From Iphione sp. A-MEVVRFRX5 (taxonomy: Eukaryota): DNA of 64,000 bases. Position numbers and translations under genes: made by a program. Positions 57,464-64,000 of the stretch are shown one piece after another. The notes under the pieces are model-generated. The model searched no databases. It was given only the letters and a program-made list of their open reading frames with translations, and was not told the origin of the DNA. The stretch's first letter is position 1. Each line of letters starts with the position of its first letter. The stretch lies in assembly GCA_976226885.1 (NCBI GenBank), contig OZ320318.1, forward strand, positions 17,360,001 to 17,424,000, written 5' to 3'.

Positions 57464-58475
57464 TTACGACCAATTTGGTCCATTGGCCAAAACGTTGGCA
57501 GCTTGGGCAGAGGCAAGCTGCCTACTGGTATATTTTGCAGAACCTGGAAGAGACCTCCACGTGCCTTGGGCCAGGATCTGGCTATCCGATGCTCCTGCAA
57601 GCTGCAGGGCCTGGGCAACACCTCTTCTAAAACTATGAAGGCTATACAAACTAGTATCATAACCTAAGGTGGAAATGGTTTTCTTAAACACAGCTGATAA
57701 TTTTTTAGCCGAAAAGGGCATGGAATATGCTTGATCAGTAAAAAGGGGCTGAGCCGGGTGGGCGGTGAGGATCATATGCATCATGTCCACTAAGGCTTTC
57801 ACCGGGCAATATGGAGCTACTATCTTTGGGACTGTAATTACCTCGGGGGGGCCCAACCTTATTGTTTTGGACCATTTGACCATTACCTGGACTGAATCAT
57901 CAGCCAGCACGACGTCGCTTCTAGTTGACTGTTTCTTTGGATCAAATGCTTGCTGTGACTTGGGGGCTATATTACTCTGCCTCACCAATGAAAAGAACAT
58001 GAAGGTAAAAATGGAGTTAAGTACAATACCCAATTTACCTAGCTTTCGCAGGTGGTGGTATATTTCTGACAACATGGGTATGGTAATAGGTGACTTCTGA
58101 TCAACCTGATGCTTCGACGTCAGGTGCATCGCTTTAATGGCTGTTGATACCTTAGGTGATTCAAAGGCTACAATAGGGAAGTCTTTCTGCGATATAACAT
58201 ACTTCAAGGAAGATACATACTGGGCACAGACCTGTGGGCTCCAATTTTGGAGGTCCAGATATTCAATATATAGCATGATATGAAAGTCTCTTAGCTGATT
58301 CAATGGATATTGGTAGTGCAGACAAAAGGCAAGGCCCAATTCTGCCTGTTGCATTTTTCGTTGGTGTGTTGCAGCGGTGATGGCTTGGCGCTGCCTAAAT
58401 ATGGCCTTGGATGCTAATGGCTTGAGCTCAGGAACTGTAATCGAAATATATGGCGATATACAATTCGGTGCTTAT
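57464..58475 (-). CDS. Tyrosine recombinase of an Ngaro/DIRS-like retrotransposon (N2)
   Basis: Catalytic pattern present: FFSLVRQSN (R), VKWSKT (K), YSLHSFRRG (HxxR), GTWRS, KYT (Y). The frame extends upstream of ATG 58354 to about 58475. Confidence 0.9.
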
Positions 58476-58703
58476 GTTAAGATGCCCTCATAGCAACATG
58501 GATGTAATGGTCACCGGCTAGTGCGGAGCGTACTGACTGAGGGTCCGGGGAGAGGCTGAATTTTGGAAATTAGGAGTGGTCATTTATATCGATATTCTGT
58601 CTCTGTGTAGTATCAACAATTGTGACGACCTTGTTAGGGTGTATATGACATACATGGTAAAATTTGAGGTTCTGCGCGGTTTTAAAATTGCCGACGGTCA
58701 ATA

Positions 58704-60461
58704 ATGGGTGAAAAAAACGGGTACGACGTGTCTAGGGAGGGGGTAATACCTCAGCCAATACTGACGCAGCCATTATGTAACACTGCCCTGGTTTCGCAGA
58801 GTCTCCAAGTGCACACCGAGCCGGTTGTGCCCACTACTGAGGAGCATTCGGAAATCACAAAAAATCTCACTATCACAAACTCCCAGACGAGTATAAAGGA
58901 TTATATGATCAGTCAAACAGAAATGCAGGCTACGCCTAATGCCAGTGAAGGTGATAGCCGGAAGCGAAAAAAGGAGAACAGTCCCTTAACTGAGTTGCAA
59001 CTGAAGGGTAAAAATACCAATAATGACCCATCGAATCTCTGTGACCCCGCTGTCATCGATTTAATAATATCTGAAATTAACAGAAAGGGAGAGGAAACTC
59101 TTCAGGAAATTAAAACCTGCCTCACAAGTGAATGCACTATAATAAATGCTAAAATAGTAGAACTGACCTCGAAGTTGGAGACAAATGATGCGAAAATCGA
59201 TGCGAACACGGCAAAATTAAAACTTCTCGAGGATGAGTTTGAGGAGCTGAAGCGTGGTAATGCTGAGACCAAAGGAGAAGTTGACATATTGAAAAAGACG
59301 GATCGTGATAACACAAAACCCCTCAAAGATGACTTAGACAGCCTAAGATCAGATATATCAGGCTTAAACAATAGTGTGAAACATCTCTTGACAAATGGAC
59401 AATCGAGTGATTCTAAGACACCTATTGATACTGACCTGGATAAGAAACTTAGAATGAATAACCTATACATTGAAGGACTAGAGCTGAAAGAAGATGACGA
59501 TCTGATGACCAAGATAAGGGAACTGATGACAAGCATTGGAGTTGTTTTGTTGGACACGGATGTGGATCATCTGTATAAGGTTCCAAGACGACAACCCGGA
59601 TCTAGTCCTGGAGTGTTCTTCAAATTGGTTCGCTATACTAAATGTGTGGAAATCCTACAAAAGAAGAAAACCCTAGGTAAACGCAAAGTTTGGATCAATC
59701 GGGATTTGACTCCATCTGAGCGAAACGACCAATACATGATAAGGTCCACTGTCCGAGCAATCAAAGAACACTGCCCTGAACTGGAGTTCACGGTAAAAAA
59801 AGGTGGGATATATATTGGTGAAACTCTATACAGCGTAACTCAGCTCGGTGATATTCCAGAACTGAAGGATGTCAATGTACAGATCAGAAAACCAGCTGGT
59901 ACAACTGGAAAGTCTATCAGCGGGAGAAAGGCAAAAAAGGAGAAACCTAAAGCTAAGCCTAAGGACAATAAAGAAGCTGAAACATTGGCCTTCGCTGGTA
60001 GTTCCTCACCACTGTCTAATTTGTATGAAATGACCTTTACCTGGGACAACATCCAATTCTTACACGTGGAGCAGGCCTATACATATGCTAAGTGCAAGGC
60101 CGCTAATATTCAATCAAAGATGGCCAAAGCAATGCATATCACGAATCCCAAGGACCTGCGCCAATTAAGGCATAGTTTACCGGTAATAAATGACTGGAAC
60201 AAGCTTAAGTTAGAAATCATGCAGGAACTAATTTGGAACAAATTTGACCAAAACGCGATATTGAAAAAGAGATTACTAGAAACTGGAGATGCAATCTTAG
60301 TAGAAGCCACGACCAACAACTTCTGGGGGGCCGGTGTGGTAAAAAATTCGAAGCAAATCCCAAAGCATACATATCCAGGGTCAAACTGGCTTGGCAGACT
60401 TCTTGAGATAACAAGAAGTGATTTGAAGGCAGATGACGAAACGCCGATGGAGGATCAATAG
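58704..60461 (+). CDS. Element C ORF1 (585 aa): coiled coil + L1-type RRM/CTD + C-terminal NADAR (YbiA-like) domain
   Basis: RRM RMNNLYIEGL..VWINRDLT. NADAR from ~59979: SSSPLSNLYE..FLHVEQAYTYAK..WNKLKLEIMQELIWNKFDQNAILKKRLLETGDAILVEATTNNFWGAG..GSNWLGRLLEITR, matching the YbiA pattern FSNF..SEHYFQAQK..W....VM...KF.Q...L...LL.T....LVE....YWG.G...G.N.LG.LLM..R. Confidence 0.95.
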   Translation: MGEKNGYDVSREGVIPQPILTQPLCNTALVSQSLQVHTEPVVPTTEEHSEITKNLTITNSQTSIKDYMISQTEMQATPNASEGDSRKRKKENSPLTELQLKGKNTNNDPSNLCDPAVIDLIISEINRKGEETLQEIKTCLTSECTIINAKIVELTSKLETNDAKIDANTAKLKLLEDEFEELKRGNAETKGEVDILKKTDRDNTKPLKDDLDSLRSDISGLNNSVKHLLTNGQSSDSKTPIDTDLDKKLRMNNLYIEGLELKEDDDLMTKIRELMTSIGVVLLDTDVDHLYKVPRRQPGSSPGVFFKLVRYTKCVEILQKKKTLGKRKVWINRDLTPSERNDQYMIRSTVRAIKEHCPELEFTVKKGGIYIGETLYSVTQLGDIPELKDVNVQIRKPAGTTGKSISGRKAKKEKPKAKPKDNKEAETLAFAGSSSPLSNLYEMTFTWDNIQFLHVEQAYTYAKCKAANIQSKMAKAMHITNPKDLRQLRHSLPVINDWNKLKLEIMQELIWNKFDQNAILKKRLLETGDAILVEATTNNFWGAGVVKNSKQIPKHTYPGSNWLGRLLEITRSDLKADDETPMEDQ

Positions 60462-60558: not shown

Positions 60559-61242
60559 ATGTCTCTAGAGCGGTTCATTTATATATTCTCCAGTAGCCAT
60601 GGTCGAGGAATGCAACAAATTTTTTACCAGGAGGGGTGGAATGTCAATGTAAAATTCTATCCCGGTTGCAAATTGGAGGAGCTGACTGAGCACATTGTGT
60701 TTGGAAACTGGGACCCCTATCCCAGCATTATCGTCATTCTATGTGGAGGCAACAACGTGACAAGGCTCTTACGATGTAGAGACAGAAATGGAAACAGACT
60801 AAGGTATGTTGTCCCCCGTTACCATGCTTCGTTTAGTGCTGCTGACCAGCTTGAGAGCATCTACTGGGACTGTAGAACGAAAATACAGACCCGATATCCG
60901 TACAGTGTTATAATGTTATCTACCATCTTCAGTGTGGATTACGCTGTGACTAATTACAATCTCAACGGTTACCATGGTGACCATGAGGCTACCACACGCA
61001 TACAAGACATGATAAACCAAACCATAACACTGGTAAATCAATGCATAACGATGATAAATCATACGTTCGGCATTCTAACTCCGTGGTGCAATGCAGTAGT
61101 TCACTCCAGAAACCATGGTATGTGGAGGCATCGTCTAGTGAGACTCCGTGACGGTACCCACTTGGCTGACTACTGGAAGCGTAAGGTAGTGAGAAAGATT
61201 ATTAAAGCACTACTCAAACTATTGTATGGTAGTGGCTGGTAG
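60559..61242 (+). CDS. Element C ORF2: SGNH/GDSL-type hydrolase (227 aa from MSLERF)
   Basis: Block I IFSSSHG (nucleophile Ser), block II YPG, block III ILCGGNN, block V RDGTHL (DxxH). Confidence 0.85.
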   Translation: MSLERFIYIFSSSHGRGMQQIFYQEGWNVNVKFYPGCKLEELTEHIVFGNWDPYPSIIVILCGGNNVTRLLRCRDRNGNRLRYVVPRYHASFSAADQLESIYWDCRTKIQTRYPYSVIMLSTIFSVDYAVTNYNLNGYHGDHEATTRIQDMINQTITLVNQCITMINHTFGILTPWCNAVVHSRNHGMWRHRLVRLRDGTHLADYWKRKVVRKIIKALLKLLYGSGW

Positions 61243-62183
61243 TTGACTGACGGCTAGGCTGCTCCTAACTTCGCGTATGTGCAAGTGGGCTGAGGTGAAT
61301 GCACTATAACCAGGACGCTGTACACGCTCATGACTTCTTTGTCTCAAGGATGTTTATCCTGAAATTGACAAACTTTATTTATCAACCTGAAATGATGATG
61401 TCTGACCCTAGTTGTACACTGAAAGGATGTTTATCCTGATAATAATAATAAATAGGAGTACCTAATAACAACAATTAGCTATACAAAGTTAAATTGTGAT
61501 ACTACATCATTTATTGGTAATCCTGTTGACTATATAACTGTTAAGGATGTTTATCCTGAAAGTACCTGATACGTTACTACTGTTGTTAATGTTATTTGTC
61601 ACGAAGTTGTGTTACATATCAATCAAATAACTGATTGACTATATATCAACTATTCTTAATATACTGTGAGGTAGTTGTTTTTTGACCACTCCTAACTATG
61701 TAAGGATAATGCTAGAAAAGTACAATTAAAGATGTTGATTCATATGTTAATTAATGTTTTACTTGTATTATATTACAAGTCCTGTGTGTTTGCCTCCCTC
61801 TCCGTGGACCCGAAGCCGGTGACCGTATTATAATATTTCTCATTTTCACAATTTAATTCTCTATTAACTTACAATCTCTAGTTACATTAGAGTGAATCCA
61901 AATTATCTTATACTAATAATATTTGCTATCATAATTTACTCCTATCATTTTTAACATTTATTGGATTTATAACCAAAGACACTATAGAAGTTCTTTGAAA
62001 CGGTATAAGAGACATGAGATATTCACTAATAGGCATCTTTGGATGCAAACGAGGTACTATGAAGGTAATAATGAATAGTTACTCAATGAGGTTATTTACA
62101 AGTTGTGTTACAGATAACACAACATATCTGGTGGCTGCGATCGCTCCTATGAACAAGTGCGTATATTGGATGATGTTAACCAT

Positions 62184-64000
62184 ATGGCTGACCTAACGGG
62201 AATTTTTGGTATGTACCATATAAACTGCCAGAGTCTGCGAGGTAAGTGTGAAGAATTTGAGTTACTGTTTAGCACGACTGAACCGGACTGTATAGTTATA
62301 ACTGAAACTTGGTTAAGTGCAGAAATACCTTCGCAGCTATTTGAAAGGGTGGGGTATACTATGTTGAGGCAGGATAGAGTGGGTAGACGAGGTGGTGGTA
62401 TTCTTATATATTGTAAAGATTATTATGGAGTTAAATATGACATCCTGAGTACTAGACAGGTTCTGTGCGCAGATCTAGAGATGATGGTAGTCAACATTGA
62501 AATATGTGGTAACTGTACAATTCAGTTATATGCATGTTATAGGCCGCCGAATGGCAACCTCAACGAAGCACTTGATATCCTAAGAAGTACCATAGATAGT
62601 ATAAATGGTACAAAACATAGAAAGTTGTTGATAATTGGTGACTTCAACGTGGACTGGGCAACCAACAACTGTGCTAAATCTAAAGTAAAATATTTTTTTA
62701 CCGAAATAACACTTAAACAGTACATAACAGGGCATACAAGAGTTACCACTACATCTTGTACCATCATTGACCTTTGCTTCAGTAATCTAGGTGATACATT
62801 GATGTGTGATGTAATACATACTACAATTAGCAATCACTATATGTTACAAATGTTGATTAAAGATAGATTAAAGATAGTTAAAGAGGTTCGCACTTATGTT
62901 GACTATTCTGTGCTGAACTATATACTACTGCATCAGATGGTCATGGAAATTGACTGGACTGATATGTACAGATCTAATGATATAGAATACAAATGGGAGG
63001 TGCTCCTCTTAAATATAAAAAGAATAATGGATCAATTACTTCACACCAAAAAGTATACAGTCAGACGTGACACACCGAGGTGGGTAACTGGAGAGTATTT
63101 AGATTTGGTTCATATGAAACACCAAGCACGAAAAACATATATTGAGAGTGGAAATCCCATCGACTGTCTGAACTACCATATGTTAAAATCGAAAGTTAGG
63201 AAAGGTGGACAACAACTTAGAAAACGTCTAATAGAAAACAGACTAAATAATACTTCTGATAATCCACATAAATTTTGGCACAATTTGAAGTGTGAACTAG
63301 GCATGGGCAAGAAAAAGAAGGGAATCTGTACAGAAACAAGTTCAGAGGATACCTGCACCTATCAAGAGATAGCTGATAAATTGAATGAACACTTTGTCCA
63401 AGTAGGCCCTAAAATTGCCGAATGCCTAGGTGAAGAGGTATACACATACAGAGGTAAGATTACTGCCTGTCGTTTAACTTGGCGGGCAATTGACCTACTC
63501 GAAATAATAGAGAATATATTCAAGGTTCCAAATCATAAGGCTAGTATGATGCTGGATCTCCCCAACTATATCTGGAAAGACATACTCTTTATAATAGGAA
63601 CAGAAATTGAACACTTATTTAATTTTAGTTTTGAAAGTAATACTTTGCCTGTCGCCTGGAAAGCGGCTACTGTAACCCCTCTATCCAAATGTGAAGATAA
63701 ACAAGGATTCGACGTAAATAACTACAGACCTATTAGCCAGCTGCAGTTGATTAGCAAGTTAATGGAAAAAATAATATATGATAGAATAATGACATTTTTG
63801 GAGACGAATAACTTACTAACAGAATGCCAGCACGGTTTTAGAAATAATAGAGGGACCGACACAGCAATTTACACACTACTGGGTATGGTATACGAAGGCC
63901 TAAATTATTCTAAGAAGATCTGTGCAGGTTTCATCGACTTCTCCAAGGCATTCGATTCTGTTTCTCATGAAATACTACTGGATAAATTGACAAAAGTAGG
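62184..64000 (+). CDS. Element C ORF3: endonuclease-reverse transcriptase, open to the window end (partial)
   Basis: Manual translation from ATG 62184 (MADLTGIFGMYHINCQSL) found no stop through 64000: ITETWL, CYRPP, IGDFN, IIDL, ISNH, NYRPIS, QHGFR, FIDFSKAFD. Absent from the ORF track, presumably because there is no stop codon inside the window. Confidence 0.9.
   Translation, partial: MADLTGIFGMYHINCQSLRGKCEEFELLFSTTEPDCIVITETWLSAEIPSQLFERVGYTMLRQDRVGRRGGGILIYCKDYYGVKYDILSTRQVLCADLEMMVVNIEICGNCTIQLYACYRPPNGNLNEALDILRSTIDSINGTKHRKLLIIGDFNVDWATNNCAKSKVKYFFTEITLKQYITGHTRVTTTSCTIIDLCFSNLGDTLMCDVIHTTISNHYMLQMLIKDRLKIVKEVRTYVDYSVLNYILLHQMVMEIDWTDMYRSNDIEYKWEVLLLNIKRIMDQLLHTKKYTVRRDTPRWVTGEYLDLVHMKHQARKTYIESGNPIDCLNYHMLKSKVRKGGQQLRKRLIENRLNNTSDNPHKFWHNLKCELGMGKKKKGICTETSSEDTCTYQEIADKLNEHFVQVGPKIAECLGEEVYTYRGKITACRLTWRAIDLLEIIENIFKVPNHKASMMLDLPNYIWKDILFIIGTEIEHLFNFSFESNTLPVAWKAATVTPLSKCEDKQGFDVNNYRPISQLQLISKLMEKIIYDRIMTFLETNNLLTECQHGFRNNRGTDTAIYTLLGMVYEGLNYSKKICAGFIDFSKAFDSVSHEILLDKLTKV

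Follow-up and report, generated by a model that had tools for sequence, protein, structure and literature searches.

The 64,000-nucleotide stretch analyzed here (the window; Iphione sp. A-MEVVRFRX5, contig OZ320318.1, positions 17,360,001 to 17,424,000) carries an open reading frame, ORF1, whose product is an L1-type ORF1 protein (ORF1p) that continues in frame into a canonical NADAR domain. On its anatomy, ORF1 almost certainly heads a long interspersed nuclear element (LINE), a non-LTR (long terminal repeat) retrotransposon of 6,994 bp that has three ORFs and is complete and structurally intact. The parts of ORF1 are as follows, with coordinates given as window positions and amino acids (aa) counted from the ORF1 methionine; RRM denotes the RNA recognition motif, CTD the C-terminal domain of the L1-type protein, AF2 AlphaFold2 and pLDDT the predicted local distance difference test.

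58704..60461, plus strand: ORF1, 585 aa from ATG to stop, comprising a disordered N-terminus, coiled coil, RRM, CTD, basic linker and NADAR
59046..59369, plus strand: long helix, the presumed oligomerization coiled coil (aa 115-222; AF2, Foldseek alignment with 2ykp)
59424..59852, plus strand: RRM and CTD, the RNA-binding core of an L1-type ORF1p (aa 241-383; AF2 beta-alpha-beta topology, Foldseek)
59880..59972, plus strand: Lys-rich disordered linker (aa 393-423; pLDDT below 50)
59973..60443, plus strand: NADAR domain of YbiA type (aa 424-580; catalytic E456, K463 and E534, ADP-ribose-contacting W498 and W541)

An L1-type ORF1p fused to a NADAR domain

The structure of the ORF1 product was modeled with AF2 from 15 copies found in the same genome. 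The mean pLDDT of the model was 68, with block means of 84-94 reached in the folded parts, and the layout recovered was a helix (115-222), an RRM/CTD (241-383), a disordered segment (393-423) and a NADAR fold (424-580). The helical part consisted of helices 115-203 and 205-222, for which block-mean pLDDT was mostly 84-94 over approximately aa 121-190, dropping towards either end. When the model was compared with the PDB using Foldseek, the best entry was E. coli YbiA (2b3w; E 5.5e-6, TMt 0.70), followed by the trimer of human L1 ORF1p (2ykp; E 1.1e-4), the Phytophthora nicotianae NADAR with bound ADP-ribose (8bau; E 1.2e-4) and then further RRM-CTD and RRM entries. The RRM/CTD region matched 2ykp, 2yko, 2ykq and 2ldy (RRM-CTD), 2w7a (the L1 ORF1p central domain) and many RRMs. 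The Pfam profile Transposase_22 gave no match to ORF1 at E <= 0.1, and Transposase_22 clusters appeared in the ESM Atlas listing with scores of only 0.78-0.79. Since no sequence match to Transposase_22 was obtained, the L1-type assignment of the N-terminal half of ORF1 rests on fold.

A sequence-only reading of the window had described ORF1 as an L1-type coiled-coil/RRM/CTD protein that continues in frame, through a Lys-rich linker, into a NADAR domain. The AF2 topology and the Foldseek matches to 2ykp, 2ldy and 2w7a bear out the first half of this description. The 585-aa ORF at 58704-60461 bears out the second, with every motif quoted in that reading present in the translation (PLSN, VEQAYTYAK, KFDQN, LLETG, LVEA, FWGAG and GSNWLGRLL) and the linker reading GRKAKKEKPKAKPK. 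A profile match and a structural match to YbiA had been named as the checks on the domain, and both were obtained. The Pfam NADAR profile PF08719 covers aa 434-574 (profile positions 10-162 of 163) with an E value of 4.4e-25 and a score of 89.2 bits, against a cut-off of 35.1. YbiA itself is the top Foldseek entry given above. The NCBIfam profile of the YbiA-type N-glycosidase domain, TIGR02464, gave the best sequence match, scoring 87.9 bits where the cut-off is 73.7. Matches to PF08719 above the cut-off were also obtained for another copy from this genome (L033) and for distant relatives. In the AF2 model the domain takes the YbiA-like fold, with small sheets on the flanks of a helical core, and has block-mean pLDDT values of 86-93 over approximately aa 441-520.

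The active site was mapped by aligning the domain to 8bau and 2b3w and transferring the residue roles described in PMC11543638. In this alignment E456, K463 and E534 fall on E43, K50 and E125 of the P. nicotianae NADAR and on E88, K95 and D171 of the E. coli C7 NADAR. The counterparts of W498, K502 and W541 are W89, R93 and W133, which contact ADP-ribose. Mutation of E88, K95 or D171 in the C7 enzyme abolished either hydrolysis of ADP-ribosylated guanosine (G-ADPr) or rescue from DarT1 toxicity (PMC11543638). The same positions were then read in the 30 copies closest to this one, whose identity to it is 53-100%. E456 was retained in 28/30, K463 in all 30 and E534 in 27/30; at the contact positions W498 was retained in 29/30 (the exception being a stop codon), K502 was K or R in every copy and W541 was invariant. 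The glutamate on the last strand (E534, within the motif LVEA) places the domain in the YbiA family. An antitoxin of the DarG1/BC4488 type was considered and rejected, as the last-strand residue is Glu rather than Asp and the neighboring genes are esterase and endonuclease-reverse transcriptase (EN-RT) ORFs rather than an ADP-ribosyltransferase (ART) or DarT1.

Selection was examined by the Nei-Gojobori method on codon alignments of intact copies, in which synonymous sites were saturated for most pairs. For the closest pair, the window copy and the C1 copy, the NADAR gave a dN of 0.032, a dS of 0.59 and an omega of 0.05. In each of the 14 pairs, dN was lower for the NADAR than for the other four regions of ORF1, which makes it the slowest-evolving part of ORF1, under strong purifying selection. 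The highest dN was found in the linker, which differs between copies in both length and sequence. In 17/30 of the nearest copies, one open frame longer than 500 aa still runs through the fusion. Given the intact catalytic residues and the strong purifying selection, an active hydrolase on the ribonucleoprotein (RNP) is a reasonable inference from these sequences.

Two short conserved motifs were also seen in the N-terminus of ORF1p, which is disordered and variable elsewhere: QTSI.DY and TPN...RKRKKENSP.TE (window 58884-58994, aa 61-97). Across 15 copies, reaching down to 38% identity, there is no variation at Q61, I64, Y67, T77, P78, K87, R88, K90, N92, S93 or P94. In sequence, these motifs look like a nuclear localization signal and a Ser-Pro site.

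The three-ORF element and its insertion site

The remaining parts of the element were delimited in the window and in an extended locus, L031, that reaches past the window end; positions beyond 64,000 are therefore given as window equivalents. UTR denotes an untranslated region, TSD a target-site duplication and APE the apurinic/apyrimidinic-type endonuclease.

58505-65498 (past the window end), plus strand: whole LINE, 6,994 bp, three open ORFs
58153..58504, no strand: left copy of the 352-bp direct repeat (TSD), 98.0% identity over 352 bp by blastn
65499-65849 as window equivalent (L031 4000-4350), outside the window, no strand: right TSD copy, found by blastn
58505..58703, plus strand: 5' UTR, 199 nt, from the TSD edge to the start codon of ORF1
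60559..61242, plus strand: ORF2, free-standing SGNH-fold esterase, 227 aa, with a conserved ATG 97 nt past the ORF1 stop
61243..62156, plus strand: ORF2-ORF3 spacer, 914 nt without a long ORF
62157..64000 and onward to window-equivalent 64895, plus strand: ORF3, APE endonuclease and reverse transcriptase (RT), 912 aa from a GTG; first ATG at 62184
To window-equivalent 65498, plus strand: 3' UTR, 603 nt, AATAAA followed by a short TAA-type tail, ending in ...AATAAAGGTTATAATAATAAT
57464-58354, minus strand: tyrosine-recombinase-like ORF of a DIRS/Ngaro-like element, with a weak Phage_integrase match
L031 4335-5600, minus strand: RT ORF of the DIRS/Ngaro-like element (RVT_1, E 2.6e-8)
L031 6609-7232, minus strand: further segment of the DIRS/Ngaro-like element

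Homology to the two nearest copies (C1, 80% DNA identity; C22, approximately 70%) spans 58506 to 65498, that is, to the edges of the repeat, and the alignment of the C1 copy begins at query position 207, which is window position 58506. Because the TSD edges and the homology boundaries coincide, the LINE is taken to occupy 58505-65498. The shared TSD and shared homology boundaries argue against unrelated insertion histories of the ORF1 and EN-RT parts.

ORF2 begins with MSL or MAL at the same site in 22/22 copies, across which the mean column identity is 74% and S12/S13, G63, N65/N66, D198 and H201 are conserved. Searches with the Pfam and NCBIfam profiles returned no match to ORF2. The AF2 model of its product had a pLDDT of 82 and a best Foldseek E value of 8.7e-6; all Foldseek matches at E <= 0.001 were SGNH/GDSL-type hydrolases, except for two designed scaffolds. 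The hallmarks of the SGNH fold are present in ORF2, namely a Ser in block I, Gly and Asn in blocks II and III, and the Asp-x-x-His of block V.

Beyond the spacer, in which no tandem repeats were detected by Tandem Repeats Finder, ORF3 matched the Pfam profiles RVT_1 (E 1e-34), Exo_endo_phos_2 (E 2.7e-6) and Exo_endo_phos when the extended locus was searched. A homologue search of public proteins with the EN-RT gave 634 matches, all no more than approximately 34% identical, and neither these nor the ESM Atlas named the RT clade. The ORF is short (912 aa), is devoid of a C-terminal CCHC motif and carries the RT motifs Q-HGFR, FIDFSKAFD and a LIEYA-type motif, which we take to be CR1/L2/Jockey-like. 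Judged on ORF length, the missing CCHC and these motifs, the RT probably belongs to a clade other than Tx1, namely one of CR1/L2/Jockey type.

The LINE is inserted in a DIRS/Ngaro-like element of the opposite strand, whose recombinase-like and RT ORFs lie on either side of the insertion and whose segment 58300-58440 has other copies in the genome at 75-78% identity. The two TSD copies differ by 2% (7 mismatches), which makes the insertion much younger than the split from the nearest relative. At 352 bp, the TSD far exceeds the 5-15 bp typical for LINEs; values of 5 bp and 15 bp have been reported for ZfL2-1 and L1, respectively (PMC4245944).

Copies in this genome and relatives beyond it

We next consider how far the element recurs. 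The 1.18-Gb genome was searched with each of the three modules; because scores were computed for the top 150 or 50 candidates, all counts of linkage are lower bounds. The NADAR domain gave 3,415 candidates, the esterase ORF 2,386 and the EN-RT 26,903. The best 150 NADAR candidates all had E values below 1e-37 and identities of 45-100%, and mostly lay within open frames of 500-630 aa. An esterase match was located 100-180 bp downstream, on the same strand, for at least 27 of the 30 best NADAR matches, and 0.9-1.9 kb upstream for at least 40 of the 50 best EN-RT matches; the latter interval is the gap between ORF2 and ORF3 seen again in those copies. The identities of the three modules to the window copy co-vary (Spearman 0.86-0.93 for the 27 elements present in all three tables), a descriptive figure since the copies are related to one another. 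From this co-variation, NADAR, esterase and EN-RT appear to have diverged together. Both accessory enzymes are better conserved than the EN-RT: the C22 copy is 80% identical in the NADAR, 87% in the esterase and 67% in the EN-RT, and the corresponding values for the C22:63.10M copy are 69%, 84% and 54%.

Outside this genome, a profile made from 15 ORF1s was searched exhaustively against 1.84 billion representative proteins. Below an E value of 1e-30 this search returned 227 representatives, and below 1e-10 it returned 5,620, most of them 400-700 aa long with two matched stretches, one in the RRM/CTD and one in the NADAR. A word-index homologue search with the whole of ORF1 or with aa 424-585 returned nothing, which we attribute to the limits of the word index. 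The top match of the profile was XP_048255699.1 (Haliotis rufescens LOC124129589), a gene model of 4,240 aa annotated as an uncharacterized protein, in which seven stretches were matched; it was the sole named protein among the 20 ORF1-profile matches looked up. This model is probably a set of LINE ORFs merged by automatic annotation. Several NADAR domains per chain were also seen by Pfam in other proteins, five in P0002 (ENA, 1,075 aa) and three in P0093 (NCBI, 2,914 aa). Either these are genuine multi-NADAR proteins, or copies of transposable elements (TEs) have been strung together in the gene models.

Two ENA contigs of another assembly carried a NADAR-ORF1 followed by an EN-RT, with identities to the present LINE of 23-24% in ORF1 and 29-32% in the EN-RT. 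In one of them the interval holds an ORF of 208 aa, a homologue of the esterase ORF (hhalign 96.6%, E 5e-10). The linkage of a NADAR-ORF1 to the EN-RT of a LINE, for which the sequence-only reading had proposed a search, thus recurs both genome-wide and in these contigs. The fusion is likewise no one-off, given the thousands of candidates in this genome and the relatives in other assemblies. In the ESM Atlas, NADAR clusters of 415-489 aa were found, and the few taxon records among them were Annelida. On the strength of the distant relatives in public data, the design is old and widespread, in lophotrochozoans at least.

The esterase of a distant relative (L035 10743-11366, ENA ERZ25767047) has a classical block I, FTDSRG, together with GINDIT and DGLH blocks, where the family in this genome has FSSSHG, GGNNV and DGTH. 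As read from these sequences, the nucleophile context of the esterase has changed within the lineage.

Proposed function, alternatives and known systems

The explanation that we favor as a whole is an intact LINE whose RNP bears a base de-ADP-ribosylating NADAR, and we consider it about evenly balanced between right and wrong. By homology with L1 ORF1p, the coiled coil would oligomerize ORF1p, and the RRM and CTD would cover the RNA of the element itself. The YbiA-type NADAR, with its complete active site, is joined on by a flexible basic tether of approximately 30 residues. Since ORF1p would sit as oligomers on the RNA, each RNP would display many copies of an N-glycosidic hydrolase. The likeliest task of this hydrolase would be to strip ADP-ribose from guanine or cytosine bases of the RNA template, the cDNA or the single-stranded target DNA, so that target-primed reverse transcription could still use these nucleic acids. 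The separate SGNH esterase encoded by ORF2 and the APE-RT encoded by ORF3 would complete the element.

Base de-ADP-ribosylation as the function of the ORF1p NADAR is proposed tentatively and by analogy, as a possibility that falls somewhat short of even. NADARs of every subfamily tested, the YbiA type and a sponge enzyme included, free ADP-ribose from guanosine (guanine N2) in DNA or RNA, and NADAR- and YbiA-type enzymes also take ADP-ribose off cytidine (PMC11543638, PMC11125620, PMC11833690, PMC12945103). Several points weigh on the other side. Hydrolase activity has been measured for no retrotransposon NADAR. YbiA-type NADARs are weaker on nucleic acid than the DarT1-associated ones and do not have their DNA-binding extension (PMC11833690, PMC11125620). 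Finally, searches of the host genome for base-directed ARTs gave no match for the Scabin-like profile PF22596 or for Enterotoxin_a (PF01375), although control genomes were blank as well, so this result is not evidence of absence, and CARP-1 is the most divergent member of its ART family (PMC12945103).

The substrate might instead be a small molecule, such as free ADP-ribosylated nucleotides, another ribosyl N-glycoside or an NAD-derived signaling nucleotide, with the enzyme shifting the metabolic or immune state of the cell in the element's favor. We regard this as unlikely, though several observations speak for it. The best sequence match of the domain is, as described above, the YbiA-type profile TIGR02464, above its cut-off. 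YbiA of E. coli acts on N-glycosides of the riboflavin pathway, and ARTs of the ScARP type accept free nucleosides and nucleotides as targets too (PMC11543638, PMC12945103). The domain, moreover, is a "naked" YbiA fold that does not carry the DNA-binding extension of DarG1 NADARs (PMC11125620). However, the flexible tether to an RNA-coating protein puts the enzyme on the RNP, which fits a polymer substrate better. Animals do not make riboflavin, so the known small-molecule substrates of YbiA are unlikely in this host. Furthermore, YbiA-type enzymes do hydrolyze G-ADPr and its cytosine counterpart on oligonucleotides (PMC11125620, PMC12945103).

A second alternative, to which we assign a low probability, is that the NADAR is mainly a non-catalytic module that binds nucleic acid, ADP-ribose or a host protein, so that catalysis is dispensable. 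Single copies among the 30 nearest ones carry E534K, E534Q, E456K or E456D, and the E534K copy (L006) keeps an open ORF1, observations in favor of this alternative. Yet the catalytic positions are retained in 27-30 of these 30 copies across 53-100% identity, W498, W541 and K502 are retained with them, and the NADAR is the most constrained part of ORF1.

Improbable in our judgment is a role in the processing of RNA ends or the repair of RNA in a retrotransposition intermediate, with no host modification to be countered. This is the sole published hypothesis for retrotransposon NADARs, being the proposal of de Souza and Aravind for viral NADARs that was repeated for TEs in PMC12477816, and the tether to an RNA-binding protein agrees with it. 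However, the NADARs tested so far were inactive on RNA or DNA ADP-ribosylated at phosphate ends (PMC11833690), and no NADAR is known to catalyze a particular RNA-processing reaction. The idea that the fusion is an accident of one copy, whether a chimeric insertion, read-through into a captured host exon or an artefact of ORF calling, was rejected as having a negligible chance of being correct, in view of the 3,415 candidates, the open frames of 500-630 aa, the fixed order with esterase and EN-RT, the distant relatives and the omega of 0.05.

Returning to the base de-ADP-ribosylating NADAR, its benefit to the element could lie in counter-defense against host ADP-ribosylation of retroelements, which is plausible by analogy and has circumstantial support in the literature. 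T4-like phages use an orphan NADAR against DarTG1 (PMC11825919), and homologues of CARP-1 have been found mainly in Bivalvia (PMC12945103). In its most specific form, the proposal would be that retroelement RNA or cDNA is restricted in lophotrochozoans through ADP-ribosylation of guanine or cytosine, carried out by the hosts or their microbes (with enzymes of the CARP-1/pierisin type, for example), and that the LINE RNP is coated with an active base de-ADP-ribosylase in answer; argued from these parallels, this form remains doubtful. If it were true, the ORF1p NADAR would be the eukaryotic transposon counterpart of the phage anti-DarTG1 NADAR, and animals would possess a hitherto unrecognized genome-defense pathway based on ADP-ribosylation. 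Should the substrate be base-linked ADP-ribose on nucleic acid, this would add a new layer to the conflict between host and transposon.

The NADAR class is known only from toxin-antitoxin systems, phage counter-defense and riboflavin damage control, and the roles of animal NADARs are stated as unknown by ADP-ribosylation researchers (PMC11125620). An ORF1p NADAR gives them a concrete context that can be tested biochemically. As a corollary, many of the "animal NADAR genes" in mollusc and annelid surveys may be LINE ORF1s, and transposons may account for some of the NADARs counted in animals, gene models like that of Haliotis rufescens possibly among them. LINE ORF1 proteins are usually regarded as passive RNA chaperones, with the esterase of CR1/L2 elements as the sole well-studied enzymatic accessory. 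The NADAR is a second class of enzyme on an ORF1p, and it has been kept under strong selection in a very large and old LINE lineage beside a separate esterase gene.

Among known systems, mammalian L1 ORF1p (2ykp, 2ldy, 2w7a) shares the coiled coil-RRM-CTD order, and the predicted fold fits the human trimer. Unlike the protein described here, it carries no enzymatic domain, and the sequence similarity lies below Transposase_22 detection. Zebrafish ZfL2-1, which has a CR1/L2 ORF1p of the esterase type (PMC3905857), also combines an SGNH-fold esterase accessory with a coiled-coil ORF1p. In ZfL2-1, however, the esterase is a domain of ORF1p, whereas in the present LINE it is the free-standing 227-aa ORF2, the NADAR is what ORF1p carries, and block I reads FSSSHG rather than GDS. 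The ORF1p-internal esterase type was accordingly rejected for this element, its esterase being a separate ORF.

E. coli YbiA and the P. nicotianae NADAR (2b3w, 8bau) agree with the ORF1p domain in fold, in the E/K/E positions with a last-strand Glu and in the ADP-ribose-contacting Trp, but are free-standing single-domain proteins, bacterial and oomycete respectively, with 22-24% identity to it. The closest functional analogy is to the orphan NADAR of T4-like phages (PMC11825919), to DarG1 and to viral macrodomains, that is, to a mobile or parasitic element with its own eraser of nucleic-acid ADP-ribosylation. At the position of the last-strand Glu, the phage NADARs carry His and DarG1 carries Asp, and macrodomains are of an unrelated fold. 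The host searches with PF22596 and PF01375 also brought up no partner ADP-ribosyltransferase for the ORF1p NADAR. The Gypsy LTR elements of Ectocarpus (PMC12477816) are a further case of a YbiA-family NADAR recruited by a retrotransposon. There, though, the domain lies at the N-terminus of Pol rather than on an RNA-binding ORF1p, in another class of element and another kingdom of hosts, and it probably represents an independent capture.

Closest of all are several Tx1 LINEs of Crassostrea gigas in Repbase, whose ORF1 proteins apparently contain a NADAR of the YbiA family according to one sentence in Genome Biol 2025;26:320 (PMC12477816). They resemble the present LINE in having this domain within the ORF1 of a lophotrochozoan element, and a role in RNA processing was suggested for it there. 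Because of this mention, the sequence-only reading was wrong, in the strict sense, to suspect that a NADAR in a LINE ORF1 was completely novel; the bare ORF1-NADAR fusion is already in print, albeit without analysis, and is neither unique nor wholly new. The C. gigas elements differ in being classed as Tx1 (L1 group) and were reported without anatomy, selection or a survey of copies, and the present LINE has a separate esterase ORF in addition. What is added here is the anatomy of an intact element with exact ends, a three-ORF layout with a free-standing esterase, a family numbering in the thousands, and catalytic retention together with purifying selection on the NADAR.

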